Source: Ascoidea asiatica JCM 7603
Lineage: Eukaryota; Fungi; Ascomycota
DNA length: 30,062 bases
Assembly (NCBI GenBank): GCA_001600695.1
Contig: BCKQ01000014.1
Span: 359,555-389,616, forward strand
Direction of reading: 5' to 3'
In this document: piece by piece, positions 1-29,163 of the stretch
Numbering within the stretch: the first letter of the stretch is position 1
Layout: every line of letters starts with the position of its first letter
Translations under genes and position numbers: made by a program
Notes under the pieces: model-generated
Told to the model about the DNA's origin: nothing
Database searches by the model: none
The model's input: the letters and a program-made list of their open reading frames with translations, nothing else

Positions 1-1053
1 AAATTATCGAGTTTTATATTTACTATTTTACATATTTTAATACATAATATTTATTATTAATCTATTTATAATATTGACATTATTTTTCATTAACCTTGAT
101 ATTTTTTAAACTAAAACAACTTAATTTGTTCCATTATGTCTCAAGAATCCCAACAGTTTCTGCAGTGGCCATATTAGATTTACGGTTGATAATAATCAAG
201 TTAAACCTTGGCATACCGCTTTTGCAATTTTTGAGATCCCCGTTAATTAAAGTTGCCAATATGTGATAAGTTTTAGTTTTTCGTTAAATGTGTTTTGAAA
301 TACGAATTAGGAAATTGATGAGAAAATTTGAAAAAAATATTTTGTTGAATAAAATTTTAAAACAGATCGTGTATCACTTTGGAAACTGTTTGTCCAAAAC
401 ATTCTTTGATGTTATAAATATATCATGTGTTACGTAACTGATTATGTATACCTGGGCCATGACGGGTTTTCTACTAGTTATGTAATCAGCACAAAGCGTT
501 GATAATAAGTAGTGGCATAAAGGTAGAGCGCATATAGTCCAGCAACAAATATACATACTTAAGGAAGTTATTTCAATCACCCGCTGTCAACTTTCGACTT
601 TTGCCATTTTAGTAAGAACGTAGACCAAAAAAACAATAACGCCACGCCTTAGCCATGGGGGTCGCAGGCAAGAAAATTTTGAATGTGGCACCTTTAAAGT
701 GGCCAGAAAACGAAGGTTTTTAATTACTTTTTTAACTGGATTTTTAAAAGTTTTCTTATTAAAAAGATTAAAACTGATAGAGCCTAGGACAGATTGGTCG
801 ACAGAAATGTCCGACATTTTTTAGCTTTTTTAATCAAAATTTGAAAAGGGTCTTTTTAATAGAAGTATAAAAAATATTAGACGACTTAATTATATTACAA
901 CTTCATAAAACAAATAACATGTTATTATAATTAAATCATTTAGTATACTACTTAACTAGTTAATAAAAATAAAAAAATTAAAGTCCCACTACAAAAAACA
1001 AATATAATATCAAAAGTTTTGAATACAATAAAAAAATAAAATAAAAAGGAAAA

Positions 1054-1166
1054 GTCAATTGATTAAATGAAATAAAATAAAAAAAGAAAGTCAATTGATT
1101 AAATAAAAGAAAAATACTTAGGTGTTGAATAGAAAAATCAAAATAAAATAAGATGGTCAATTGATT
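1054..1166. repeat. Three copies of GTCAATTGATT (palindromic TCAATTGA core) in an A-rich tract
   Basis: Copies at 1054, 1090 and 1156, downstream of the minus-strand gene ending at ~1213. Confidence 0.7.
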
Positions 1167-1212
1167 GAACATTTAAAAAGTAAAGAATATAATATAAAGA
1201 AGTCCTTTAAGG

Positions 1213-3480
1213 TTAAGTTACCAATTCAAAATCAGAGTTATTTTCTGAATCATCATCATCACTTATACTAATAATTTCAGTGTTTTCAGGTATAGAAATT
1301 TTATCTTTTTTTGTTTTCTTATATTTTTATTTTTCTTACTATTTTCATTTAATTCTTTATTAGTTTTTGGTTAATTATTCTTTTTTTTTTGGGTGGATTA
1401 ATGTCTAATTGTTGGAAAAATTCATCTCCAACATTTTTAGTGGATCTCCTAGTTCTAACAGCTATTGATTCAGTAAAAGTTCTTGAAGATGAATCAGCAA
1501 GTTTTCTTTAATTTGAATTTTTTTTACTATCATTATTATCAGGAGTACTTAAATAATATTCAAGTGGCTTAAACATAAATGGTGGTTGAGGATTACCAGT
1601 TGTAAGTGATGGTTCGTTCAATGGGAAAAAAGGAGTTGAATCTTTGGTTGAATGTTTGGTTGAATATGTTGATGAATGTGTTGATGAATGTGTTTTAGAA
1701 TTTCTGGAATTAGAATTAGAAGTTGAAGTAGTAGTGGAATTAGAATTTAGTTTATTATGAAGTTTTGAAAAGCTGGTTGATTTACTTAATAATATAATTT
1801 TACTAATACCCTTTGAATTTTCATTTAAATTTATAGGTTTAGTTGAATTTGAACTTTGAATTGGATTTTTAATTGGATTTTTAGTTGGATTTTTAATTGA
1901 ATCTTTAATAGGTTTTTGAATTGGTCTTTGAATTGTATTTTTAATTGTATTTTTAATTGGTTTTTGAATTGTATTTTTAATTGTATTTTTAATTGTATTT
2001 TTAATTGGATTTTCATTTTTAGTTTCATTTGAATTTTGATTTGAATTATGATTTGAATCTAAATTTTGAATTTCATTTGATTTTTTAATGGAATCGTTAA
2101 TTGAATTTTTAATTGAATCTTTAATATCTTTAATTGAACCAAAATTTAAATTTTTATGTTGAATTGAATTTTTTATTGATCCTTTAATTATATTCAAGTT
2201 TGAATCTTTGTTTTAAAATGAATTTTTAATTGAATTTAAAGTATTATCATCTGAATAATCTACAAAAAGAGAAGAATCTTTGAAAAAATAATTATGATCC
2301 AATGGTTTATGTGATTTATTTTTCTTTTCTTTCTTTTTCCCCTTTTTGTTATCATTTTTTTCAGTGAATTTATTTGAATTATCTTCGATGTAAAGAATTT
2401 GGTTGATTAACATAATTACCATTTTTTGAATTGAATTCTTCTAAAACATAATTTGTTTTATTGGATGTGTTTAAAAAATCATCATATTTTTCATCTTTTT
2501 GAATTGAAAAATTAGAAAACACATTACGATTAACAAAAAAAGTTTGATTATAGTCTAATAGTTTAATTGGATCACAAATATTTTGCTGAGAATTGAATAG
2601 ATTTATTCTATAAGGAATTTGATTTAAATAATTTTTAAAATCATCATCTAGGGAAGATAATAGATCCATTTTAATTTTACTTGCAGCAAAAATTGGTTGT
2701 AATTTTTTTCTCATTTTTGTTTGTAATTGTAAACTTGTAAACTTAAATTTTTCAGCTGCATCTAAAGCCTTTTCAAGAGAATCTTTATTTGAAGAAATAT
2801 CTACAAGTTTTTCAAAAAATACTCTGGATAATCCAAAGTATTTTACATTAATTTCCATATAGCATTTTTGTTCTATTTTAATATTTGTCATCCCTTTTCC
2901 TTTTTTTTTTTCCAATATATAAAGTAATACCTTTGGAATTAATTGATGAGGAGGTAAAATTTCTTTTTTATGATTATTAATAACTGTACTAATTTTATAC
3001 TCTTTTCTTTCAATTGCTTTTGTAGCTCTGTTTGATAATTTTGAATAATTAAAATTTTCAATATCTTCATATTGAGAAAGGGTGATAGGACAATCATTAG
3101 ATAATAAATTTACCAAATCCAAAGTTGTAGAAGAAGATTCAACTTTTAAAGCAAGATTGAGAACATGAGTCCATAATTCTCTTTCACTTTCATATTGAAT
3201 AATATTACTTGTCTTGGATTTATTCACTAAATTTTTTTCAACAACTTTAATAAAAGCATTATCTGAGCTTTTAAGAAACACTATAACAAGAAAGCAAAAT
3301 CATATTTGAAAAAGGTAGTCTTAAGAATCAATTGGATATTTATTATACCCCGTATTATAATTTTTCATTTTCATCTCTGCTATTGAAGTTATTATTGAAT
3401 TTTTATCGTTGACACTTTTGTTATCAATAAATAAGTGAGCAACCTTTTCATGAGCATTGAAAATTCTTCGAGTTTCATTC
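1213..3480 (-). pseudogene. Frameshifted gene for an unknown ~700 aa protein: globular N-terminal part, K/N/S/T-rich low-complexity C-terminal half
   Basis: ORFs 2379-3281, 2213-2422 and 1508-2197 plus a tail (..PPKKKRII..EIISISDDDSENNSDFELVT*) are collinear and join through frame changes near A/T homopolymers. A probable intron (GTATAA..TTATAG) lies near 3281-3347. It could be an intact gene with sequencing indels. Confidence 0.55.
1850..2010 (-). repeat. 12-bp coding tandem repeat (K-N-T/P-I units)
   Basis: Arrays of TTTTAATTGTAT/TTTTAATTGGAT that translate as KNTI/KNPI/QKPI in ORF 1508-2197. Confidence 0.85.
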
Positions 3481-11159: not shown

Positions 11160-12295
11160 AAAGCAAAAACAAGCACTGCAGATTAAATAAAAAACTAAAT
11201 AATGTTATCAATTTGTCTAGACACATCTGTGCTGGCTGTTCTTATTCTATTCCGAATTTGATCAAACTCGTAAAAGTTTTCTCAATAACTGAACTGACTA
11301 TAGCCATATATAGCATTTTTGAATTTGGTTTTTAGCTTCAGAAATATACTCAGGTTCCAATTCATTAATAAAATTTGTTACGACATTCGCCATAACATCC
11401 GGTGAAACAATCATTTGTGTTTTGTCTGGGTTGTTAAGCATCGTGTTCGTTCGCCATAAAATAGTCGCCCATTTTCAGCCAATTATCTTCGACATTAAAT
11501 TACAGTGTTTGGATTTTCCACAATTTCCTTTACAGTTTCAATTTCATCAATGTGATCATAATCGTGTTTGTGCAATAAATAATTATAAAACCATTCACTA
11601 ATAGAAAATGAACCGAAAGCACTGAGATGATTAAAAATATTTTTAATATCTCCAATCATTTCATTGAGGGCTTTTAGAATTCCTGTTCGTTGGTCTTGTT
11701 TGACACTAGCCAAACCTGTAAGGCGATTGAACTCTTGAAAGAAATTTACACTGAAAAAGGCTATTTCTGGATTCAAAACTGAAAATGTTAAGCAAACAGT
11801 TAATATTTTGAATTAAATAGACGTAGTCTTGAACCGAGGGTTCAAACTTCTTTAAAACCAGTAAAGCTTATCATTAGACGTTTGAAATTGTCAGTTTCAA
11901 TGCTGAGCGGAATTTCTGCAATGATATGTTCAAATTGTTAAATATTATTTTGGTTTACAATAGAAGAAAGAATATAATTTTAATTTTTGATACCAATTTA
12001 TAATTAAGGTTCTAATATTAAAACAAAACACAAGGAATATTTACCTGATCTAGCTAACAAACCTTGGAATATTTTCTTGTTTTTTTATCTTTAAAAGAAG
12101 AAATTGCTGTAGCACATAACAATAATTGATTTAATTGACCCGTTACAGATCCAAGGAGAGCGTTAAAGTTCTCATGAAGCTTTGAAGCTAAATCTTCTTA
12201 TATGGGTAAACTAGTTTGAGACCTATATCTGTTTTTTAAATTTTTCTCATAATCCTCAATGAAAAATTTTCTCTTTGTATTGAATTCTCATTCAT
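11160..12295 (-). pseudogene. Decayed three-exon gene, unknown helical protein starting MNENSIQREKFF
   Basis: AAAATG at 12295. Introns at ~11916-12044 (GTAAAT..GCAG) and ~11779-11822 (GT..TTAAC..TTCAG). ORF 11495-11776 continues after a frameshift as ..KWATILWRTNTMLNNPDKTQMIVSPDVMANVVTNFINELEPEY.. Confidence 0.55.
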
Positions 12296-13265
12296 TTTAC
12301 AAATTTACAATTTCGAATTTTATAATATTTTACATACTATGTATCAATCATGTAACTCGCACTAATCGATGATCTAAAAAAAAAGTAAATAAAGTAAATA
12401 AAAAAAAAAGAGGAAATCGATACATTTTATGGTAATTCTGGATTCCTACGGGCCCGGAGAGCTATCGAGAATTGTCGCGAAATCCGAAACCTCCGAGAAT
12501 TCGGGCTTAGAATCACGCCGGGAATCAAGTTTACCTTGTAAAAAGGGTTGGAAGCTTCATTAGCAATTAATTGAAATTCACATTTCAGTTTAACATAGCA
12601 CAACCATCCAGCTGCTATCCACTCGGCTAGACAACCAAACTGAAAAGCCGGGAATAATATTTAATCGCGACGCACGGCACAATCCCGGACTCGGAATACA
12701 TTCTCCGGGGACTAGATCCATTTGTCTCCTGTTTACTCCGAGGCAATTAAGTACCCCCTGTGCGGCTTATACCTTGTCTCATATAAAAGTAGCCTTATCC
12801 AATTGAACCATCAAGAAGGCGTCGCTACTTGGTTCCGATTGGCATTTGGGATTTAAGTTCTATCCGTATAAACGCTAAATACTCTTTATTAATCTTGTAC
12901 CAAGTGGCTAAGCTTCAATATACTTTTAAAGGTTCTACGATTGTGGCTGGCAACAATGTCAAGGTCTTTTCTATATTGAACGCTATACCGGACGTATGCA
13001 CCCACGATCTATGCCACGTGACTGGAATATGTCCTGATATCCGAATATTTGTGATCCAATACACAGACTCATGCAAGGTCATGGCTTTTGAAGTATTCTC
13101 CGTGCAACTTAATGGAATAATATGCAACTATCTGTGTATTTATTCCTAATTATGCATCTCTATGCATAATTGTACATAACGTATACATATTTTGGTATAA
13201 TACATGACTCTATTACGTCTACTATAGAAAGATGTCGTTGAGAGCTACACCGCCTATGGTGTTAA
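12275..13265 (-). repeat. ~1 kb repeat, copy 1 (inverted relative to 28174-29163)
   Basis: Manual alignment: 12615-12878 vs revcomp 28563-28826 is 264 nt, gap-free, with about 76 mismatches. A 31-nt perfect block lies at 12520-12550 = revcomp 28892-28922. Confidence 0.93.
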
Positions 13266-13479
13266 AGTACCAATATATGCCCCACCAGAAATAGATTTTT
13301 ATTATTTCCAACAGTATGCAGTATTATTAAGATTGAGTACCTACTCAAAATTTCATAACTTTTTGCAAAAATAGCTAACCTTATTCAATAAAAAAAGGGT
13401 CCATGCCAAATCCTATGTATTGAAAACTTTGAAGATATTGAAGTATTACTCAATAATTATAAAAATTCAGAAGCATTCA

Positions 13480-15010
13480 ATGCTAGACGAATCCGATAGT
13501 TTTTGCATTGGTATATTTAATTTTCACACTCAAATAAGTAAAACAAACACTACGAATGACGCCCTTTATAGGCCCATCAAGTCGGACAATAAGAAAAGGC
13601 GGATTGCAAAGCCAATCGCGTGAACTTAGAGTCCTGGTTTAATTCAAATAATACAAGTAGATTAACCTTTAAAACTGCATACCGTGTTAGAAAAACTAAA
13701 AAATTGCGTGCCGTTAATTGCCCTGAAGAGGTCAAACTATTTGTCTTTGACTGAAATGTTGTAGTTGTCCAAGCTGCTAGGCATAACCACACTTTATCTG
13801 CGAGTGACAGTTATAAACAGTTAGCTCATATTGGGGATATTGTTCCTAGGCAATTTGCCCACACTTACTCAGAGGTTGCCAATGGACAAGCCTTACCAAA
13901 TATTGCTGGCAGCCTGTATGCTAGCATGGGATTTCCGTAGATGCTAACCACACCGTGCGCAATACTACCAATACTGTGCACCATCCAATGTTCTTGAACC
14001 AGTGGCGTTAAATGTTTCTGAAGATGCTCAAAATTCATGCGCTCTACTACAGGAACGATAAGCTAAGGCGTAGTAGAAAAATGTATGCTTTTTTGGGTTA
14101 CCTTACTTTGTTGGTGCCTCAGTTGAAGCACCACTATGGTTCATGGAGTGAAGCCATGGTACTAACATTCACAAATATATTTTAGTTACACTGGCTTTCA
14201 TATGAGCATTTCTACTGCGCATATTGTTATGAAAACCGAAAGTCCTGCCATTGCAGTTACTACGAGCCGCTATAGGGCTCCCTTGCTGCCGAGCTATATA
14301 ATTGTGGATAACTGTGCACCCGAAATGCTAGGAACCGGAAACCTTAATAATACAATTGCAACTTTTGTTTGCCAATGGCACGTGTTTCAGTACTGGCAAA
14401 GGAAAAAATTACCGTATGCGGTAGGTACCATTTATATTAACTTAAGAAGTGCTATGTACGCTCAAACATTGAATGAAGCTTATGCCTATATTGATGTAGC
14501 TTCTTTCGTTGGCACATCGATTGGATGAGGAGCTATAGTTAACTATACTCAAAGGCAAAGAACTGAAATTGGGCTTTCGTACACGCCAAACAGCAGGTTC
14601 AGTCCAACGATACTGCAATCCACTTCCACACAAATATGAGAAGGTTTACACTCAAAGATTAAAAGTACCAGAGGTGCAGCCATGAAGAACACCAATTTGG
14701 TTGTTACTATCGTAAGTAAAATAAAACTCTTGTACCAAATAATTTTTCGGAAGCAGCTTCGCGCTGCCAATGCCGAACAGTACAAACAACTTTAGGCAAT
14801 TGCGGAGCTTCCCGATATCTCCCTTTTTCTGTTTGTTTTCCAAAAGTTTAATCGGATCTGAAGTACTGAAGCCTTAGGCGAACATTCATGCAATTCCGGA
14901 ATATCAGTTTGTTGCTAGTGCAACAGGTGGTTGGTGTTGGGCCCGGTTTTTTAAGAATTTTCGTTAACCATGCACACACATATTTTATGCAAAGTCTCTT
15001 GTTGCAAATT
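13480..15010 (+). mobile_element. Mutator/MULE (MuDR-like) DDE transposase pseudogene with FAR1/WRKY-like zinc finger and SWIM domain
   Basis: Motifs in order: KKLRAVNCP..VVVVQAARHNH (13700-13790); LWFME*SHGTNIHKYILVTL (degenerate DxTHGTN, ~14134-14195); YIIVDNCAPE..FVCQWHVFQYWQRK (second D and CxxH); WAFVH..HTNM/EGLHSKIK (catalytic E, 14640); WCx..F....PCTHIFYA (SWIM, ~14930-14990). Multiple stops and frameshifts. Confidence 0.88.
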
Positions 15011-16934: not shown

Positions 16935-17075
16935 TTCACAAAAACCTGTCTTAACCGCAACCTGAAAACAATTTTTTTTGCGGTTATCATAAGTGGCTTA
17001 ACTATGTAAAACCTTTCTTGACTGGCCAAATTTTAATCTTTCATGTCAAAAATCCGGTAACAACTGTTTCCGTTT
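16935..17075 (+). repeat. GGTTA-box site, copy A
   Basis: TAACCGCAA (16952) - 17 nt - TTGCGGTTA (16978); degenerate third box ATCCGGTAA at +100 (17052). Confidence 0.75.
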
Positions 17076-17515: not shown

Positions 17516-20500
17516 ATGAATAATTTTAATCTTTACTTCAAACCGACCGGTAACTAGCTTGTCGATTAGGTCAAAAAAAACTGATTAATTCTCGAACAGC
17601 AAATGTTTTGAAGAATGTTATATCTCTTTAAAAAGTAAAAAAGAAACGCCAAATATATGCACTTCTAGAGAAGGCTGCCAAAGTTTAGAATGGGTTGTAG
17701 TTATTCTATCAAACATTAGCACCTTTACAATTGCTTAAAGAGCCCATTGAAGGGGTTAACTAGGATAATAACTCAATTTTTTTGTGTTCTCATTGTCATT
17801 ATGTCCACCGCTCAAAAGCAAAAGTCTTCAGTCCTATTTCCAATAGTTATGAGACTAAAAACTCTTCACCAGTACAAGCGGGTTCGTACTCGCTCAGGGT
17901 AAATGGCTGCAAAAAAATTGTTTCTTGTTTTTAAGGAAGAAGACTCTAGAAACACATCGTTAAATGATGCCTCATGTTTTTCGGAACGGTAGCTTTAGAC
18001 TACAGATTAAATGATACTCATTTGCATCCATGTGGCTACTCTCTTTTGAGGTCTTTTAGAAAAAGTGGAGAAGCTAATGATGTTAATGAGATTAATTATG
18101 ACTACACTAACCTAAAACTTAACATGAATAAGATTTTCGGCATGGTACTTGTCCAACTGTTTGGTTATCCGAAAATATTCTCAAAAGCACCGAAGGATTG
18201 TTACATTTGTGCTTCCAGTGCTGAAAGTCATTCTATTTATGCTGGGTATGCTACGAAATTTATAGTTTCTCCTTGTTTGGCTTGCAAAATGACAGCAAAT
18301 ACCTCAATTAATACAAAAAACCTAAGGCAAATTATTTTTCAAAGATATAACGTGCCCATTGCAGCTCTCCATAATGCAATTTCTGGTTTAATTTAAAGGT
18401 TCTTTACTACTCCCTATTCCCTTTCAAATTCCAATGCTTTAACCGCCTCTTTTGCAAGCTCGTGGGAAAGCAAACTCAACCAAACCTCCAACTCCTCAGC
18501 AAGATCCCATTATTTTGACGCTATCACTTTTCTTGTTAAGCTTTGCTTTTGTCATAAATTTTTACTTAACAATTTAGACCCACAAGGCCTTCCTTGAGTA
18601 CAAAATTAGATTTGGACCATCGTATTTTGACCACAAAAACATTATTTAATCAATTATTTAGATTGAAAAACAACAATTTTAAGATATCAAACTGTGTTAC
18701 CAAAGTTTCGTGGGATATTTTAGACCAATATGGTAAGAAAGTATCCATTAGTAGCCATGTAATAACAATGGATTAAGTTAAAAGCATTCCTGAGTTTTAT
18801 CGAAAAAATATAAGCAGAGAATTAGAAGTATTTCATTAGACTTGGGCGTTAATATCAAATCTGTTCATTATTGTTGTAACTTATGGCAGCCCTCTATAAT
18901 TCGTAATAGTTCCGATGCCAATGCGGTTACAAATATTTTTTCACAAAAGGTAGTTCTCGATAGATTTTTAGAATCTGAAACATATATGACATTACAGATG
19001 AAACACAGATTGGAAATCCCAAACTTGATTAGAAACCTGCAACGGTCGTTATTCAGAATTTCATCTCCATTACTGGGAATGTTGAAGTTTGGAGTGTGTC
19101 CGCCTTACAGAATGTCAGAATTATCTACAATTAAATTGACGAATTTGAACTCTGGAGATGGACCTAGGAATATTTTTGTCCGTGGCGACCAGAAGATTCA
19201 GTTGAATATTAAGTATACAAAAAATACAAGCAGCAACCAATCTGTATTAGAATGTTAGTAAGTTCTTGCCAGTCTCATTATCCAAATTTTTTTTGCCATT
19301 TTCTTTTTCAGGTAATTCCGTTACTGAACATTTTGCAGGATACACTGGAAAGCTTTCATTTGGTTAATATTTTTTAAACACATCCACTTCTGCCACTGGT
19401 TTACCCAATAGCGAGGTTATCTCAAAGATTGCTTCTTTATTGCCGAGGCAGCGCCTATAGGGGTGTCAGACATACAGATAATTGAAAATATGGCTGTGGA
19501 AGGTAGAGTTCGAAATGATAACACACATGATGCTGTTCAATTACAACCGCAGCTCCATGAATCGACTGATGGCGAAGCATCCTCAGCTGATGATATTGTG
19601 TTAATTATTTCCACCACGGCTCGTTACTTATCGACATGTCTAATGTAGCACCTCCTGAAACAGGCTCGGAAAAAGCACCATATTTATCTAATGAATTAGA
19701 AGCATGTTCTCAACATGCTAAGATATATCTTTTCTGTAATGTACATGGTCAAATACCTTCAAAAAAGTTGTCCCATGGCTTACACAATATATATAAAACG
19801 TCATTAAGAAAGCCTCTCACTCCCAGAATATGTCGTCAAGCACTCTGCCTTTTTTCGAGACTTCTTTTGTCTTCCTTAATAAAATCAGATATACTTTCTA
19901 TGCAACTTGCCCTAGCGGCGGCATATCATAATTCAAACGCAGCTGATTTTAACTACTCTATGTCATCTGCAGCTGAGAGAGATAGTGGGTTCTCCAACAA
20001 TCACTTGTATCAACATTTGAGCAATAGTTGGCACAAAATCTTGAACTTAAACTCCAACGCTGTTAAGGCGAAAATTTCTTAATCCACTATGCGCGCCATA
20101 GCTAGATTAGATATTAATCAGGCTACGGCATCCATTTACGGTTCTAAATTTCCCACTCCGATGTTTTTCCTGAAATCTCAATTACTCAAAGCTGCTTGAC
20201 AAATTTGTCATTCGTTACTGTGATGTCCACGGGGGTTGGAAAATATATGATATACATCAATCCACTATTATTAGAAAAATAATTGAATGAGTTTTGTAAA
20301 ATAATTTTGTTGTTCCATTCTATGTTTTTCTCAGTGTTACATTACTAAGCCTTCAAAAAGTAGGGATTAAATAGCTGTCGTGTAATAAGAATAACACTGA
20401 AAACGATCTACTGCGTTGCGACAGGATAGTTGTCTCTGTGGAAGCTCTTTATCTTACCCAGTTTTAAAACTTATTTTTCTCACTTAAAGAGGCCTTCTCT

Positions 20501-21926
20501 TGAACGCCTCTTAGAAGAGTGGTTTTTGATCAGATTCATATTCTTTCTACTCAAGGGAGCTTTAGGGAAACCATTGATCTTATACATACAATTTCCTCAC
20601 CCTCGTTGCTTCATCAAGCAGTTGGATAAACAGCAACTTTACCAGCTAATAATGTAGATAAGGCGAACCCGACCTTGCATATCAACATGGATATCTTCTA
20701 TTCTAAAAATCTAATTAATAACAATATTTTATTCGCTTATTTGCAAACGAGAAACCTATCGATTAATAACATGGTAAGGGGTTTCAATTTCCATAAAGAC
20801 GCCACAGCAATCATTTATGTAAAAACATTGCAGGATGTAGAAGATGCACACTCGAAGTTGATAGGATGTGGTGATGTTTCGTTAAAATCCACTGGAAGAT
20901 ACTCGCTGTATTATAAAGTGAAACGCCTAAACATTGTTGGTCTAACGATAACGCGATTATGACTGCTGCTGAAGGATTTTTTCATGGAGTTGATTATCCC
21001 AAGGTTAAATATTTGGTGCTTTGTAACTTAGTTGGGAATTTCATAGATTTTATTCAAGGGTCTGGAAGGGTAGGGCGATGTAAGAATTTCCATGGCCATT
21101 CATTGCTATTAAATAATACCTGCTACCGATTTGAGCAGGAGCACAATATAGATGTTATTCTGGTTAAAGGGTGCAATGAAATATTGAACAATACAAAAAG
21201 TATCTTTTCTCTGTTGGGGGGGGGGTTATTTGGCTCCGAAACCTTTAAATACAGAGTCTAGCTTGCGGGATTGTGCGTTAGGTAAAAGGTATTTTGGAAC
21301 GAACTTCCCAGTAGGATAACTGAAGTTGGTAATAATAATAAGATCTCCGTTCCATTAAACAACAAAAGTCGAGTTAACGAAAAGCATATTTCATCTAAAT
21401 AAATACAGGTAGTGGATGTGAGTGCTTTTTACAATAGTATGACGCACATGTTCGGTCCGTAAAATGACGGGTTTATGGGTTTGATATCCCAGAGCCGCGT
21501 CAAAACTTGAACTGATTTTATCAACAACATCACTCAACTAACTTATACAAAGACTTTGAATTTTGTCTCCATCACATGGATAATTCTTTACGTGGTTCAG
21601 CATGCAGTGAAGAAGAGAAATGTTGTTCATCCTGTTTGTTTTCGCAGAACTTCATATCGTTTCAGTCCGACTCCAATAATAAATTTCCTTTAAAAACACA
21701 TCACTTTGACCATTCCGAAAAATATTGTAGAAGTGGGAGACAGATTACGGATATGGTAATTGTTTTGAAACTTTTTATTGAACACTGGAATTCTAGCTTA
21801 ATGGAAAAGCAAGATGGGTATTTTGATATTCTAAAGATTGATATCAAATATACATGTATGTTTGAAGTAGCTACTGAACTAGTCGAAAATCAATCTAATA
21901 GTCAATCCATCCAATTTTATTCTTAG
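17516..21926 (+). pseudogene. Telomere-linked helicase (TLH)-like gene: N-terminal Zn finger, tyrosine-recombinase-like domain, RecQ-family helicase, Cys-rich C-terminus
   Basis: ATG 17516 with a putative intron 17550-17599; PIEGV..FLCSHCHYVHRS (DUF3505-like). Recombinase-like region: PPYRMSELSTIKLTN..RNIFV..YTK..KFLP, TPRICRQ, AYHNSNAADFNY, SNSWHKIL. Helicase motifs: I VMSTGVGK (~20220), Ia FVVP, II RVVFDQIH (20528), IV AIIYVKT, V GVDYPKV, VI QGSGRVGR. CCSSC cluster at ~21620. Many stops and frameshifts. Confidence 0.88.
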
Positions 21927-22961
21927 TCTGATTGCTAAGACTTCTATTTTTTCAAATTTCAAAACAGATGTTACTGACTAATTTGTCTCACAATTGTATG
22001 ACAGCAAGTGCGATGTGCATAAGCTATTGATTGAAGAACCCCGGAAACTTAAAAGCTATCAAGGAGATCACGAGCATAGACCATTGCTGTTAGCAGATGT
22101 AATTGTAGCTGTTTCTTTATTTTTGATTTCTATATACTTTAGGGATTTAAATTAGTTAAAGAAAAGTTTAAAAAATAATCCTATTAGCCCCTCTTATAGG
22201 TGTTGTTCATTTTTTCCTTTTGGCAAATATTATTTACCGTACTCAAGCATACTCAGTCATCAGCAAAACATTTGTAGCTTTAATTAAATATGACCTTTAA
22301 TCGATAATTAGCCGACATAATATCTTCTAGCTTTTAAAAAAGTATTTTCCTAATATTTTTTTAACAATACGAATCCATCATTGCTGAATCTGTATTATTT
22401 TTTTTTTCGATTTTTCTGGCCCATTTCCTATTATTTGCATAACGTAATATTTACAAAGCAAAAACGGGGGTTCAAACGTCGTTTGCCCCCTCGAGAGTTA
22501 ATGAATTAGACTACCAACGGACATTTATAGTAAACTATGCTGAATGGGAATCAAAATACATTGATATGTAATATTGTTGACACTCCTGTATACCGTATAT
22601 GGCACATGCACAACCGCTTCTAATAAATACAATCAGTTGAATAAAGAGATGACATGATTACCCGAAATATTTACCAATGTAATGTAAAGCAGGTTACATT
22701 CAAGATAGTTTATGATAATGTGAAATAGCTTAATTCCAGAAGTGGAGGAAAAAATTACTATCTTGAGTAGTAAACTAAAATTAGATAGCTAAAGTAGGTA
22801 AACCAAATCAGTAACGCACATGATTTTATCGGAAAACAAATAAAAACCGTGAATTTCATAAAACGATAAGTTAAATGCAAACAAAAAAAAAGTTTCAATA
22901 TTTTCATTTGTAAGGAACATCTCAGTAATCTCTGTTCTTATTTGCATTTTGCTTACTAACG

Positions 22962-23130
22962 TACACATAGACCACTCTTAACCGCAATTAAAAAATGGCT
23001 AATTTTTCGATTTCGACCGGTGCCTTAAACATGTGAAACCATTTCAAACCGGAAAAATTTGTTCATTTTCAGGAAATACTGAGGTTAGAACAGGTCTTTC
23101 CGGACAAGCGAGGTGCATAACCTGCATGAT
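22962..23130 (+). repeat. GGTTA-box site, copy B
   Basis: TAACCGCAA (22979); degenerate box TTTCGATTT at +26 followed by GTGCCTTAAACATGTGAAACC, matching copy A; CTGAGGTTAGAACAGGT at +100; GAGGTGCATAACC end. Confidence 0.75.
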
Positions 23131-23829
23131 ATTTCTTGTGAGTGTATTTCTATATCACGGTATATACAGTCAAACGTACTATTGATAATCAGCTTTACGG
23201 CTAATATTTCTATCTGACAACACAAAATTTAGAATCATTGAATTGAAAGTTTATTTATTTGACCACTAAAGGTATATGTTGTTTATTATGTTAATTCCTG
23301 TTTAATTTTTCACTGTTGGTTAAGCTGAAATTTGGGTCCTTGCACATGATAGAAAATTGGCTGTTCCTTACAATTCCAATAAGCAGTCCTCAGTTAAAAG
23401 TGTGAAAAGTAAATATCGAATAAGATAAAGTTCAGCGTCAGGATAGGGGAGAACATAAAACCATTTTGATAGGGGATTCTCCAAACTAAGTAATTTTTAC
23501 ATTAAACAGCACCCGTCCTTACACTGCGACATCAGCTGCATTATAACAAAACATGCATCCTTCGTTTAATTGAGCTTCTTGTAAAAAGTGAGTCCAACTG
23601 TCATTTCGCACTACTATCATAGTCCACACGGCTAGCAAAATCTGGCATGACGGGTAACCTCCCTTGTGGTGTTTTCTTTTTTATCTTCTCTTTTAGTAAT
23701 GTTTTTTGTTACCGTCCCTTGTTTCAAATTTTGTCTATTCTTCCGAAGTTTCCATTTATACACGTCTTCTTCTCTTGTTTTGTAGTTTATTATAAAACAA
23801 TCATCATTTATTTAGAGCCTAGTGTAAAA

Positions 23830-25073
23830 ATGATAATAAATAATCTATTTGAATTTAAATATTGCTTACTTTCGAAAAGATTATTGTGTCAAACACATTG
23901 ATTCTCAAAATATTTATAATGGTGCTGTAAATTGTTCCTGGATTGCAGGTCAATCAAAGCAAACTAAAACTGGAAGTGACATAACCGTGTATAAACAGCA
24001 TATCAATTTTCCTGAAAAATATGCACTTATTATTAATTCAGGCGAAAGACCCTCTGATGAACAAGACCCACTAAGTGATGAGTCTGACAGTACTGTAAAT
24101 ATTGAACCATACTACGTCCAGTACAACGAAGTTGAAGAAGTTACGATACACATAAATTTTGCCAGAAATGCAAGCGAAACTTTGTTAGATCTAGTTTCTC
24201 AGATGGAGATCTTTTGTACTTCTGATTTTAATAGGTCAGCCCACTTGTCCCAAGCAAGCACTTTTCTAACCAGAGTAAGAATGTTATTGCAAGAAATACA
24301 GAGAGAAAACATTGCGATATAAAATGTTCTTATCAACTCCAACTGTCTCACTATTTTCGGACAGATCTCTAATTATATCTGACTAATTTGATAAGGAGTA
24401 TGTAAATTACTTAAATAAATATCGTATTTGTGGCTTGCATTTTTACTATCCTCTCCATGAAACATTTTGGTGGGACTGGATCACTCCTATGGCTTTGTTG
24501 TTTAGGGGGGAAATGCCAGACACAATCAACCATTAAAGGACTACCTTTAGAATTTTTTTCCAGTTTGAAAAAATAATTAATTGTCAGTTTTAAGAAAACT
24601 AAGCTTTCAATTCCCTTCTATAACCATGTAATCCCCCATTTAGGACAATGCCATTCAAATTTCAGGTAATATCCGTCATCTATGGATATAATGCTATCAA
24701 GGCTTATTGTGACGATCCGCTGAATTTGTGAGCTAAATTTACCTCCTGGGCCAAAAGAGCTAATTCTATTACTGTCAATAATAATGAGTTCTTGGAAGAA
24801 ATGAATACCAGGACTGAGTATTTAGCATCTCTTGTGAAAAATACTATTGGTAACTCCAAAATTTATATTACAGACGATAGTTATGACAATATGATTCTGG
24901 CTGGTGCCGCTGAAGTTCCTAGGTATTGCATCAAACACAAGGGGACCCTTTAGCATACTGCCAGGAAAAGGGGAAATAATAACCAAATTCAATGGAAATT
25001 TGCTTCCGCCCCCGCATTTGCCATGGAGAAGCTCCTAGGATTTTTTTCAATGAAAACAGTTTTTCTAATTTAA
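23830..25073 (+). pseudogene. Decayed ~410-codon gene, unknown function
   Basis: AAAATG at 23830. ORF 23849-24322 continues past stops and a frameshift as ..YRICGLHFYYPLHETFWWDWITPMALLFRG..FTSWAKRANS..KLLGFFSMKTVFLI*. Confidence 0.6.
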
Positions 25074-26037
25074 AATCAGCCAGAATGAAACTAAATAGCA
25101 TGTTTCGTAATATTCCTAAACCTTTATTGGTGGTTTCATAGAGAGTACATAAAAAAACACGTATATTATTTTTATTCAGTAACAGGTTAAAAAGATATAG
25201 ATATATAGATATATATATCTATTTTCAATTTTATACAGCATAATGATCTTCCGTTTTCTCAAATCATCTAACTGAACACTCGCACTACATTTATTTACCG
25301 AAAATTAAGATAAAAACTTACTTAAATTCAATACACGAAACACATCGGTGCTATTACGAATTTTCAGTAAGTTCATGTTTGGCTTCCAGTCTAGTTAACT
25401 TTTCGTAAAAAAGTCATTTGCTGTTTACTTGTTTATGTTTTTAACATAGCTCTATCGGCTGAGTTTTGTTTACTAAAGTAGCACACACGTCCTAGCTGCA
25501 TCCTTTATTTTCCAATATAAATTCAATCCATGTAAACGAATTATTTTATTATCAGTGGTCTTTCTTTAAACTAGCAACAGTATTCTGTTCTAACAAAATA
25601 CAATAAATGCTGGGAAAGTTACTTCAAACCTCCCGTGTTTGTGGTTAAAATTCCCCATATTATATTATACTTCAAATATATAGTAAATGAGCAGTGTGGC
25701 AGATTCGTACAACGGGAACTTTAATTGTTACAGATTTAGGTGTTAATGTGCCTTCTGGGCCACATATATTTACATATCCGTTACTTTGGAGTTTGTTGTA
25801 TCAACTTATTCTACTTGGTATATACTACTAATATTTCCTAAACTTGGTATCAGTGTTCTATATATGACCGTTATGAATGTATAGCTTACTATATCCCGAA
25901 TTCTCAATTTTGTAAGCAGTATCCTTACTTGGTGCCTACTACATAACAATACATTAACATTATATATTTATTCCCCTGTTGTGCTAAACCTGATTTGTTT
26001 TTATTATCAGGATTATAATTTCAGCAGTTTGGATAGT

Positions 26038-26205
26038 GTTGCATAAACCAGTCTTAAACGCAACTTCAAATCTCCAAATTTTGCGGTTATGAAGGGTCTG
26101 TTATCAATGTATGAGTCTTTGTATTACGATAAATTCTCGACCCAAAGGCCAGGATTGCGGTTATAAAAGGTTTTTCATACACAGAGGTTGCATAACCCTC
26201 ATGCA
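26038..26205 (+). repeat. GGTTA-box site, copy C
   Basis: TAAACGCAA (26055) - 17 nt - TTGCGGTTA (26081); TTGCGGTTATAAAAGGT at +100 (26155); GAGGTTGCATAACC end. Confidence 0.8.
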
Positions 26206-26249
26206 CATTCAGTTTTTAAGAGTTTCTAGTTGTGGCATTTTGGAGGTCA

Positions 26250-26833
26250 CACCGGTAGTAAACAGGTCTGAAAGCCAAAAATATCTCACGTTTATGGAAA
26301 CAGGCCATATAATTGGTGAAAGTCCGTAACCTAAATTTGAAAATTTTACATTTTCTAAAAGTTATTTCCATTTCTGCGATACTTTATCAGTCAACAGTGA
26401 GCGAAATTTTACAGCCTCTTTTTTGGTAAAAAATTAAAGATGTTCCGTAAATTTTGTCCGAAGCATTAAAAATATCTTATGTTTAATTACTTAACCAGAA
26501 GGTTCCAGAATAATGAATAATGAAAAAACTCTAAACAAAAAACTGATGGTACTTACCTTATATATTTACATTTTCTTTTATCTAAGAACCCCAGTGTCCA
26601 GACTCTCATTTCGGAGGTACTATACTGTTCCAAATTTGGTAATCAATTATTTCTCGTACCTCCGCATCCCTTTCTTGCTCCCGATTTTGTCTAATTCGCA
26701 ACCAGTTGTGATAAAGTGGTGTTGGACAATGGTTACTGCCGACCATAGAAGTTTGCAACTCGTATATAGAAGCCAGTGGTGTCAGTCTCAGCACTTGATT
26801 AGTGGCTGTTACCTCATTGCCTGCCACACGCAT
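26250..26833 (-). pseudogene. Possible small spliced gene remnant between sites C and D
   Basis: ORF 26606-26833 is followed by a canonical AG|GTAAGT donor at ~26557; no recognisable domain. Confidence 0.25.
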
Positions 26834-26844
26834 TATCGTCAGCC

Positions 26845-26994
26845 ACTTTGTGCCTACAAAAACCCGTCCCGACCACTTATTTCACCGGTAAAAAAGCGTT
26901 TTTCTGGAGACTAACGGAAATGCATACTTAACAGACCTTACATAACCGTTTTTTTCAAAAAAATTTAATTGCGGTTATCAGGGGTATATGCACT
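26845..26994 (-). repeat. GGTTA-box site, copy D (inverted)
   Basis: On +, TAACCGTTT (26943) - 17 nt - TTGCGGTTA (26969). The revcomp CGGTTATGTAAGGTCTGTTAAGTATGCAT matches copy C CGGTTATGAAGGGTCTGTTATCAATGTAT. A degenerate third box lies at about +99. Confidence 0.75.
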
Positions 26995-27099
26995 GTGCAG
27001 TTAATCATCGAAAATCATAGAATCCCACGAAAATACTGTGTAGATTAACAGCACATGTTATGGGCGTTTGTGACTTTCCTATATTTATTTATTTCGGAT

Positions 27100-28170
27100 C
27101 ATGTGTTTTGTTGGGCAATACTACTCAGATACGGAGAATTGGATATATATCAAGAGAATATCCCACAAAAGGTAAAATATTAATAATTGTTTGTTTTCGT
27201 AAAATTTCTTTGGCCTTGTTATGTTTATAGTTAACCTATATTATGTTCCCTGAAAATAAATAAACCCAATAACTTTAATGGTTATTGATATTCTTACAGC
27301 AGTTCCTGCTAATTCAGCAAATGCCTCAAGTAAGCCAACATCATCAATTGCAGACCCAATATTGCACAAACTGAAGATTCAGTGAAAGTTATAACTAATA
27401 GTACTGTCTCCCTAAAATCAAAAATATCAAAAATAAAACTCGAAATCTTAACCTTCAGCAACCACTTGGTTCAAATTCAAATACCAAATAAAAATTAGAA
27501 CCAAATATGAATAAAAATATCAATAAAACCGTTTTCCAAAATATTAATCTTCGTTATTTCCATATGAATCGCTTTACTTAAATAATAAATTCTCTAATTC
27601 CAAAAAAGATATCTCAAATAAAACAAAAAAGAAAAAAAACAGTCACAATGGAAATTTAATTTCATCTTCATTAAATCATCCTGTATCATTAACTAATAAG
27701 AATCTACAACCTTCTACTACTAATATGTCAAATTCCACCACACAAGAAAACCCTACAACGGTTCCTGGAAATCGAAACATACTGTCTTCTAATAGTGAAG
27801 GGATTATCCCCCTTTTCTCCCTATGTAAACTTAAAAAAATGTTAGGAACACAGAATAGTAGTGATACATCTTTTGCTTTCACAATCAGATTGAATGTCAA
27901 TAACCAGTAATCTGTTGGAAAATCTGTTAATGTTCCTGCGAATCTTAATGAATCTGATATTATTGATGTTTCTGATAAAGAAGTTCCTTTGGATCACTTA
28001 ACAATTAATCTTACCTTCCAGAAGGTGCCAGTAGCCCCATCCAAGGGGGGATGAGATTATGAAGTTACTATCCCCGTTTTCACTTTCTACAAAGAAACAA
28101 TTATTTAGGAAAAACATTCATGACGGGCTTTGGAAATAAAAGATAGCTATATATGCGAGATTATAAATTG
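27100..28170 (+). pseudogene. Decayed spliced gene, S/N-rich with a small beta-rich C-terminal region
   Basis: Putative intron AG|GTAAAA (~27172) to TTACAG (~27299). ORF 27725-27910 continues in frame past stops (SVGKSVNVPANLNESDIIDV..TINLTFQKVPV..DYEVTIPVF). Confidence 0.4.
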
Positions 28171-28173
28171 TTA

Positions 28174-29163
28174 TTAACACCATAGGTTTTGAAGCTTCAA
28201 AAGACACGTATCGATATTAGACGTAACAGAGTCATGGACTAAACAAAAATGTGTATACATTATGTACTACTGTGCATAGAGTTGCATAATTACACAAAAA
28301 TATACATACCCTTGAAACAGCTGCGCTAACTTGCTTGAAGAATAGATTAATTCGCATTACCTTTCATATGTCTAAGCAGAGGCACTCGGATACTGGAAAT
28401 CATGTGATATTATAGTCACAAGGCATAGGACATGTGTGCCTACGTCAGGTACAGTATACAAACTAGAAAAGAAGTAGGGATTTGAGCCATAGTCATATAA
28501 CCTTTAATAGCATATTAGAGCTAAACCACTCGGTATGAGGATAATAAAAGAGGACTTAGTATTTACCGTCTACCCGGATGGATGTTAAATCCGAAAGGCC
28601 AATCGGATCCAGGCCGGGATGTCTTCTGGAAGGATGATATTCCTAAGCCTAGATTCATGTGAGATAACGTTTAAGTCTCACTGCGTGTACCGAATTGTCT
28701 CGGAGTAAACAAGAGACTAGTTGAGCTAGTCCCTTGAGAACCTACTCCGAGGGTGAGTTTCGGGAGTGCTTCGGTATTGTCGATTAATCCTGGCATTCTA
28801 GTTCGGTTGTCTACCCGATTGGAAAGCGAGCGGATTGGTTTTAAAATGGAAAATTGAAACGTGCACTAGAATTGATTTCTAATCAAGTTTTCAACCCTTT
28901 TTACAAGGTAAACTTGATTCCCACCCTGATTCTACGAAGGAATCCTGGGATTTTTGGGAATTCCCGAGAATTCTCGATAGTTCTGCAGGACCTCGTAGGA
29001 ATCCTGAATTATTATAAAAGGAATCGATTTCCTCTTATTTTTTATATAATTTATTTAGTTTCCTTTTCACCTCATTAGCAAGAGTTAATTGATTAATACA
29101 TAGATTGTAAGGACGTAAAATTTATATACTCGCTTTTGTAAAGTGAATGAAAATTCACAACAA
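28174..29163 (+). repeat. ~1 kb repeat, copy 2 (inverted relative to 12275-13265)
   Basis: Same alignment as copy 1; shared blocks run from TTAACACCATAGG to GTAAAxTGAATGAxAATTCA. Confidence 0.93.
28935..29145 (+). promoter_or_regulatory. Putative Pol II core promoter at the end of the 1 kb repeat
   Basis: ~10-bp periodic GAATTCYCG-like boxes, TATAAAAG at ~29012, a pyrimidine tract, then AAA(G/A)TG AAT GAR AAT TCA. The same layout precedes ATG 12295 in copy 1. Confidence 0.4.

Follow-up and report, generated by a model that had tools for sequence, protein, structure and literature searches.

The stretch analysed here (the window) comprises 30,062 nt of the genome of the yeast Ascoidea asiatica, and has as its main feature a heavily broken gene of the TLH family, the motifs of which lie in different frames amid many stop codons and frameshifts. 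The features marked in it are as follows:

12275..13311, + strand: R1 copy, a dispersed 1-kb repeat of the solo-LTR type, with family ends TGTTG..CAACA
16937..17063, + strand: box A, a dyad of CTTAACCGCAA-N17-TTGCGGTTA lying about 570 nt 5' of the ATG, which also resembles the R2 core; candidate left end of this TLH copy, unproven
17516..21926, + strand: degenerate TLH-family gene with a zinc finger, a TLH domain of predicted tyrosine recombinase (YR) fold and a RecQ-type SF2 helicase; pseudogene, single copy
17785..17826, + strand: CxxC..H zinc-finger-like motif (CSHCHYVH), identified by eye without a profile match, at the site of the N-terminal C2H2/OrsD region of the relatives
19100..19225, + strand: YR box I, with R 19109, ExL, an RNIF strand and the hairpin K 19220, aligning with the family's GQPARxxELL..RNIF..YHK
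19256..19620, + strand: about 370 nt that the relatives lack, following the K hairpin and preceding the next strand; an insertion or intron(s), unresolved
19636..20082, + strand: C-terminal half of the YR catalytic domain, with R 19834, H 19927 and Y 19954; S..WH..L follows, matching the relatives
20205..21078, + strand: RecQ-type helicase motifs I, II (DQIH, dead), III, V and VI, in three frames
21573..21686, + strand: Cys-rich segment resembling the RecQ Zn-binding region; weak profile match (iE 0.46)
22490..23522, + strand: diverged copy of the dispersed 1.08-kb repeat R2, with box B mid-repeat; at least five other copies exist
26043..26228, + strand: box C, R2-core-like
26879..26989, - strand: box D, R2-core-like, inverted
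28130..29163, - strand: second R1 copy, in opposite orientation to the first by chance

All five residues that the original prediction had read as a recombinase active site are present in catalytic order: R 19109 (PPYRMSEL), K 19220 (YTK), R 19834 (TPRICRQ) and, nine residues apart, H 19927 and Y 19954. The RecQ motifs that it placed 3' of these are likewise there in degenerate form, running from STGVGK (20226-20243) through DQIH (20528-20539), a dead motif in which the Walker B glutamate is replaced by glutamine, and TAT (20630) to GVDYP and QGSGRVGR (20962-21078). The sequence is genuine: two samples each provide a 16-kb contig that agrees with positions 24200-28613 without a single difference, and the runs of these samples contain 99-100% of the sampled words of the gene, though the assembly may itself derive from either of them.

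The gene was searched as separate pieces, not as a joined or spliced protein. Taken singly, these found no relatives by word search, full phmmer, metagenome peptide scan or comparison with PDB sequences, and nothing in Pfam beyond a weak Helicase_C match. A profile built from 14 intact relatives matches six segments of the window in collinear order, with a chain score of 20.1; none of 60 codon shuffles scored above 1.55, and nothing elsewhere in the window above 0.2. The individual matches are weak (iE 1e-4 to 1); hhalign of the pieces against the family gave E values of 7e-5 and 0.011. All five residues fall on conserved columns of the family, and the TLH profile detects the locus, whereas the general RecQ model (TIGR00614) misses it. 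Judged from its sequence, the gene is a far diverged, dead member of the TLH family in a budding yeast.

Despite the earlier label 'TLH-like', the gene is not something separate, belonging instead to the published TLH family with its 'TLH domain'. TLH proteins of Magnaporthe, Fusarium, Botrytis, S. pombe, Ustilago and Monosiga combine C2H2 fingers, a TLH domain of approximately 250 aa and RecQ, and are terminal, with a proximal CCTAACC (10.1101/2024.02.27.582403; PMC1635262). The identification of the family as TLH rests on architecture, position, database names (NCBI's 'Telomere-associated helicase' occurs in the cluster of one relative) and the shared boundary motif, with no alignment to the M. 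oryzae or S. pombe proteins. Searches of the genome at the DNA and protein levels, with the profile and with PF12013 turned up no second copy, the last of these, a domain that relatives do carry, having no match anywhere in the assembly. As the window copy is both single and dead, all the evidence for mobility comes from relatives.

These were gathered with a DNA pattern fixing the first arginine and the ExL, and the sample is skewed towards ascomycetes; hence the invariance of R130 in the alignment (A1) is partly built in. Of the other catalytic residues, K165 is found in 65/65, R253 in 64/64 and Y299 in 59/59 of the rows reaching the respective column. Conservation of R, K, R, H and Y in intact homologues, on which the original prediction depended, was upheld: the order R-K-R-H-Y, with H-x8-Y, persists down to around 21% identity, and unfiltered homologues retain the catalytic residues in 117-120 of 120 cases. 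The histidine of box II (H-x-x-R) in classical lambda-Int/Xer recombinases is absent, the column being A, Q or S. A helicase lies downstream of the TLH domain in 38 of the 45 loci with enough DNA.

The fold that had been inferred from these motifs was also recovered by AlphaFold and Foldseek, in a model of the TLH domain (65 relatives) built on an intact relative, L130 (pLDDT 85). The best 28 matches by VIA-align were all YR or TopIB proteins, headed by Xer (Z 10.9, rmsd 3.2, 166 residues aligned), with TopIB lower, at Z 6-7.6, than Xer and Cre; the best 50 Foldseek matches in the PDB were again all YR or TopIB, the lowest E value being 4.7e-3 and none reaching 0.001. Named viral matches were mostly integrases, and an Atlas search led to XerC/integrase clusters. 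The region upstream of the catalytic domain resembles the N-terminal core-binding domain of YRs in 8 of its 22 top matches, weakly (Z 3.5-4.9), and gave no match with Foldseek. Sequence profiles of the TLH domain found no YR in the PDB or Pfam; the link is seen by structure only, and residues were equated by the order of motifs and by secondary structure, without a printed superposition. The predicted model shows the TLH domain of relatives to have a tyrosine recombinase fold; cleavage through a 3'-phosphotyrosine is inferred, without biochemistry.

The relatives also share a fixed left end, 200-600 nt upstream of the ORF, with the boundary (C)CT^A[A/T]CC in at least six independent families. 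Homology between copies ends at CTA[ATC]CC in 12 of 34 loci, ten of them within 1 nt, against a background of 3.7%; this set spans about five families, and further cases are L062/L083/L171, L176 and L177. The other 22 have no strict motif at the BLAST breakpoint, and include divergent pairs, RIP-like decay and one clade starting T^CCCCCA. The left ends join unrelated DNA or truncated older copies, giving nested head-to-tail arrays. Of the 11 sites at which the empty target could be read, 10 have CT (approximately eight of nine independent ones). In several families palindromes lie just after the left end, the motif of which resembles C-strand telomere and lies in the opposite orientation to the terminal TTAGGG array. 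No fixed right end exists; beyond the right side lie telomere repeats, present as arrays in L062, L079, L095, L112 and L176. On contigs over 100 kb, all ten copies face the nearer end, nine of them within around 16 kb, while L071, L097 and L087 are interstitial. Published data agree in that M. oryzae TLH regions begin CCTAACC against unique DNA, with the following repeat unit beginning CT (PMC1635262), and TLH copies number 14 in one B. cinerea strain and none in two others (10.1101/2022.03.07.483234).

It had been remarked that the window holds no telomeric array. This is literally true, but lends no support to a non-telomeric location: the window is the end of its contig (C14), and the gene is oriented towards that end, 8 kb away. 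Since the contig breaks in a high-copy repeat, the distance to the telomere is unknown. The ends of this copy have not been established, box A being only a candidate. The 1-kb inverted pair at 12275 and 28130 was rejected as its ends, since this repeat is dispersed in at least 40 copies and shows TG..CA termini together with a 5-bp duplication. Nor were the four inverted boxes accepted as YR sites, because box B sits in the middle of the 1.08-kb repeat, the copy of which at 22490..23522 is probably a separate element, and other copies have no TLH gene alongside where checked; none was found near the box sites on contig C10. A lone pattern match in a viral contig was attributed to chance.

We consider it probable, if some way from secure, that the window contains a dead copy of a TLH element and that intact TLH elements are one-ended DNA transposons which cap chromosome ends, with the chemistry inferred and transposition unobserved. 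The original prediction of a mobilising enzyme is supported, with corrections: the fixed left ends, CT targets, nested arrays and strain presence or absence among relatives speak for it, but the element would be one-ended and not that of a two-ended integrase. A single polypeptide, comprising zinc fingers, the core-binding-like and catalytic YR domains and the RecQ helicase, would run it. The YR may nick the top strand at CT^A[A/T]CCC and remain attached as a 3'-phosphotyrosine, while the 3'-5' RecQ motor would travel along the bottom strand, peeling the top strand off as far as the chromosome end, such that the element could do without a right end. The 5'-OH thereby released would then attack a target nicked by the YR at N-CT^, the distal part of which would be lost, with host synthesis and telomerase completing the new tip. 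Re-insertion immediately downstream of its own left end could give rise to the published 'helicase-associated repeats'.

The same end and target data could also be explained by a mobile YR element using a circle or other double-stranded intermediate, in which the YR joins the left end to a telomere repeat or another copy, a single crossover at CT replaces the chromosome end, and the helicase replicates or branch-migrates the intermediate. This is unlikely, though the leading alternative, and it draws on the C-strand telomere-like left end and on the core-binding-like domain, as found in true recombinases. Starships move through a circle or other double-stranded intermediate, as has been proposed for Cryptons too. 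Starship circles have been reported (10.64898/2026.09.21.753150). Against it, simple direct-repeat excision does not fit a motif that is inverted relative to the TTAGGG array, and junctions of right end to left end with telomere DNA are not seen as a rule. The overlap would be just 2 bp, where YRs usually have 6-8 bp.

A host enzyme of telomere maintenance, with RecQ joined to a TopIB-like or resolvase-like nicking-closing domain and functionally like Sgs1-Top3, seems a slightly poorer account. TLH would then have spread passively by subtelomeric ectopic recombination, CTAACC being a binding site for a telomere protein or a fragile site. R-K-R-H-Y without the box II histidine is the pattern of TopIB and protelomerases too, the TopIB matches score Z 6-7.6, and in S. 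pombe telomere crisis brings induction of the TLH genes, according to work cited in PMC1635262. Yet Xer and Cre outscore TopIB, this yeast has just one copy, a dead one, and ectopic recombination requires homology, so that base-precise joins to unrelated DNA at CT, arrays of self-insertion and strains with none against 14 copies remain unexplained.

Very doubtful is a protelomerase-like resolvase making or fusing hairpin ends at the palindromes that adjoin the left end in several families: a piece of the window has a language-model similarity of 0.91 to ResT/TelK clusters, but TelA and TelK reach only Z 4.0-4.1, at noise level, and relatives end in telomerase-type repeats, not hairpins. That a degraded helicase region outside the TLH family merely contains these residues by chance is scarcely tenable and already largely refuted, since weak profile matches and empty single-sequence searches are outweighed by the six collinear matches, the conserved columns and detection by the TLH profile where TIGR00614 fails.

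The proposal of one-ended elements extends to the family at large, and on balance we lean towards TLH genes encoding the enzymes of a class of eukaryotic DNA transposon not described before, a one-ended 'peel-and-paste' YR-plus-RecQ system that caps ends, deletes distal DNA and builds fungal subtelomeres and tandem repeats. The gene family is known; the YR fold, the fixed end with its CT target and the mechanism appear to be new. In print the TLH genes are host helicases, one domain of which has no known function, and neither of the two papers cited here refers to a recombinase or regards TLH as a transposon (10.1101/2024.02.27.582403; PMC1635262). No literature linking TLH or RecQ to a recombinase was found, but subscription papers were mostly not covered and an earlier report is not excluded. 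The proposal offers a testable function for the TLH domain, a question standing since 2009. If correct, more than two decades of work on TLH genes as telomere helicases has dealt with transposon enzymes, and a widespread subtelomeric family, including S. pombe tlh1/2, the standard heterochromatin reporter, is recast as selfish elements. This would account for sharp subtelomere boundaries, helicase-associated repeats, copy differences between strains and terminal gene loss in plant-pathogenic fungi.

Such elements would form a further type of YR transposon in eukaryotes, alongside Cryptons, Starships and DIRS; the separation from these that the original prediction drew is sustained, the defining features tested being absent from TLH. 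Cryptons and Starships are likewise eukaryotic DNA elements with a YR-fold enzyme, its catalytic domain preceded by a core-binding domain, as may be the case in TLH; however, PF11917, PF16787 and PF00589 have no matches in 65 TLH domains, PF16787 being absent at the window locus as well. Cryptons (NDC10_II-like YR, often with GCR1_C) have short direct repeats at both ends and no helicase, and Starships a DUF3435 captain and two ends with direct repeats, whereas TLH has one fixed end, a fused RecQ and a right side at the telomere. DIRS/Ngaro elements carry reverse transcriptase and RNase H with their YR; five intact TLH ORFs contain no reverse transcriptase domain. Helitrons (RepHel) use an HUH nuclease, with a 5'-phosphotyrosine, and a Pif1 helicase, one strand being peeled from a fixed 5' end to a 3' terminator, while AcademH combines a DDE transposase and terminal inverted repeats with a RecQ-like protein encoded separately. 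Both, like TLH, pair a nicking or transposase enzyme with a helicase, but TLH differs in its YR fold and lack of a right end.

The bacterial one-ended telomeric transposons (PAST and Streptomyces Tn7-like/TnsBC; 10.1101/2024.11.13.623437), of which TLH would be a eukaryotic counterpart, likewise have one specific end, with the telomere as the other boundary and the tip replaced. They employ a TnsB-type transposase and a separate protelomerase or terminal protein, in contrast to the single YR-RecQ protein of TLH. The Y' elements of S. cerevisiae resemble TLH in being subtelomeric, helicase-coding, arranged in tandem arrays and variable in presence (PMC1635262).

Direct searches with pieces of the window gene, each used on its own without a joined read-through or spliced model, found no relatives. 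In a language-model search, both pieces lay beside ascomycete clusters without names (0.95-0.96), the nearest named clusters being ResT/TelK, phage integrase, NDC10_II and DUF3435. Relatives were sought with a degenerate DNA pattern for QPARxxEL..RN[V/I][F/Y], taken from the window motif and from fungal TLH-type proteins, and used as a lead only. This retrieved 120 metagenome loci, the majority of them true relatives; the first 80 contained 14 intact ORFs, 1250-1720 aa long. In the five intact ORFs analysed, Pfam identified PF12013, followed by a Pfam-free middle, DEAD and Helicase_C. TLH (telomere-linked helicase) proteins have been described as comprising C2H2 fingers, a 'TLH domain' of 250 residues whose role is unexplained, and RecQ motifs (10.1101/2024.02.27.582403). 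The relatives share this layout, and they and the window gene are assigned to the TLH family on architecture, position, database names and a common boundary motif. Searching with the TLH middle domain added 414 proteins. One TLH protein is deposited as a plant 'RecQ helicase L2' (P0049, Tanacetum); its TLH domain is 61% identical to fungal copies, and it is probably fungal contamination.

The original prediction gave this domain a tyrosine recombinase (YR) fold, and this was borne out by an AlphaFold model of the relatives (65 sequences; pLDDT 85, pTM 0.87) and its matches to solved structures. Compared with 48,161 solved chains, the best 28 matches were all YR, topoisomerase IB (TopIB) or Ndc10, headed by an archaeal Xer (Z 10.9, rmsd 3.2, 166 residues), with unrelated matches beginning at 4.8. 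The top 50 Foldseek matches were likewise all YR/TopIB, none reaching E 0.001, and viral and Atlas structure libraries gave the same outcome. As modelled, then, the TLH domain is a YR fold, preceded by 300 residues with a weak resemblance to YR core-binding domains, which make up 8 of their top 22 matches (Z below 5). Sequence profiles of the domain detected no YR relationship, which may be why the fold was missed earlier. The spacing R130-K165-R253-H290-Y299 is consistent with the YR/TopIB superfamily; the box II histidine of classical YRs is absent from the domain. The expected invariance of the catalytic residues was met by K, the second R and Y, present in all covering sequences down to 21% identity, whilst that of the first R is built in, being fixed by the search pattern. 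Retention in 117-120 of 120 unfiltered homologues (51-85% identical) is a weak test alone.

Where copies with differing flanks were compared, homology starts sharply at (C)CTA[A/T/C]CC, 200-600 nt upstream of the ORF. An automatic breakpoint test found this motif in 12 of 34 loci, against a 3.7% background, ten within one base; these represent about five independent families, with L062/L083/L171, L176 and L177 additional. Upstream of this left end, the DNA is either unrelated or belongs to an older TLH copy truncated at varying positions (L083, L159, L171, L172), L171 having three copies in a row. The empty target, where readable, continues with CT (in L171, GACTC-CT-CTGG becomes GACTC-CT-ATCCC). 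CT is present at 10 of 11 readable target sites (about 8 of 9 if only independent ones are counted), and the one site without it was read from a 75% identical copy; the array upstream of L176 is built from left ends that have inserted again into their own sequence at CT. In M. oryzae, CCTAACC starts TLH regions against chromosome-unique DNA, the repeat that follows opens with CT, and the right ends are cut back to varying extents (PMC1635262). These boundaries fit as independent agreement with a fixed left end.

Two particular clades were also observed. One (L057, L113, L117, L153, L168, L174) has a GPELGS motif and an ORF that ends immediately ahead of the H..Y box, where an intron is the probable cause; the left end in L057/L153 is T^CCCCCA instead of CT^A[A/T]CC. 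The other, which is very divergent (L075, L091, L118; 21-23% identity), retains R-K-R-H-Y, and no CTA[A/T]CC end was seen in its available DNA.

Enzymes of the YR/TopIB superfamily stay on the 3' side of the nick, freeing a 5'-OH. The mechanism we favour, with some reserve and by inference as to its chemistry, is that the YR would nick the left end at CT^A[A/T]CCC, and a 3'-5' RecQ motor on the uncut strand would release the element's top strand; since the motor would travel to the chromosome end, no right end would be required. Joining of the released strand to a nicked CT target would give the 2-bp overlap that is observed, with the distal target lost and a new telomere formed. Helitrons follow a similar logic, and bacterial one-ended telomeric transposons work alike (10.1101/2024.11.13.623437), in both cases with different enzymes. 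A double-stranded or circular route for TLH movement is a doubtful alternative. Our literature search, which did not cover subscription papers, found none tying TLH to a recombinase.

All ten relatives on contigs longer than 100 kb face the nearer contig end, which for nine of them is no more than about 16 kb away; several relatives adjoin telomere arrays, some copies are interstitial, and in B. cinerea the copy number is 14 in one strain but zero in two further strains. That TLH is a host telomere enzyme, passively spread, seems unlikely to us. At the L062 end, array units change from TGTAGGG to TTTAGGG toward the tip. We give very little credence to TLH being a hairpin resolvase. By the membership tests applied, TLH is not a protelomerase, and its proposed separateness was upheld, since by these tests it is not a Crypton, Starship or DIRS element either.

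The window copy itself, at 17516-21926 (+), is a decayed gene spread over many frames, and the only copy in the genome (20.3 Mb, 71 contigs). Public assemblies of two samples, either of which may be the source, hold 99-100% of its sampled words, hence the frame breaks cannot be put down to misassembly. When the 14 intact relatives were made into a profile, it matched six window segments in order, with a collinear chain score of 20.1, where shuffles gave no more than 1.55; a chance match can hardly be entertained. The catalytic residues originally proposed were found exactly where predicted (R 19109, K 19220, R 19834, H 19927, Y 19954) and, in profile alignments, fall on the family's conserved columns, with helicase motifs I-VI downstream (Walker B, DQIH). 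The window lies at the very end of contig C14, which breaks off inside a repeat whose depth is 6-10 times normal, and the gene is oriented toward this end, 8 kb off. The claim of a non-telomeric site stands only in that no telomere was seen in the window; an internal position is not shown. The copy is an inert relic, and the main value lies in the family-level result.

The following features surround it:
12275-13311 and 28130-29163: 1-kb inverted pair of dispersed solo-LTR-type repeats (R1)
16953, 22980, 26056 and 26944: dyad boxes (A-D), real and rare in the genome
22490-23522: dispersed 1.08-kb repeat (R2), also at L045-L049 (C10, C35, C20, C3)

The inverted pair was rejected as paired element ends, R1 being a dispersed family of at least 40 copies, 71-78% alike, with TGTTG..CAACA ends; two or more of the copies show a 5-bp duplication. 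Box B lies in the middle of R2, a separate repeat; boxes A, C and D match only its core, all from one common start point. Within the 3.5 kb preceding the window gene ATG, CTTAACC occurs only in box A, whose distance from the ATG would suit a left end; that it is the left end of this copy is unproven. R2 has sharp TGTGAG..CCTTACA ends, AT-rich arms and a central 150-bp dyad, and some of its left flanks (GCTCGC) resemble its own 3' end. Some copies may have a 4-bp duplication. A solo LTR and a non-autonomous YR element are both possible readings of R2.

Read by eye, an ORF piece at 14166-14525 (+) carries the D..C-x-W-H motif that typifies MULE transposases; Pfam is blank. The left edge of the window (500-1650) is duplicated at around 80-90% on C10 (L039 8700-10000; L037 6780-7040), and also near R2 copies. 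Elsewhere, the host genome has two divergent eIF4A-like paralogues (L016, L017), neither sequence being in the public protein collection, and two decayed NDC10_II (Crypton-type YR) loci (C47:16410-17006 and C7:852687-853280; L051, L052).
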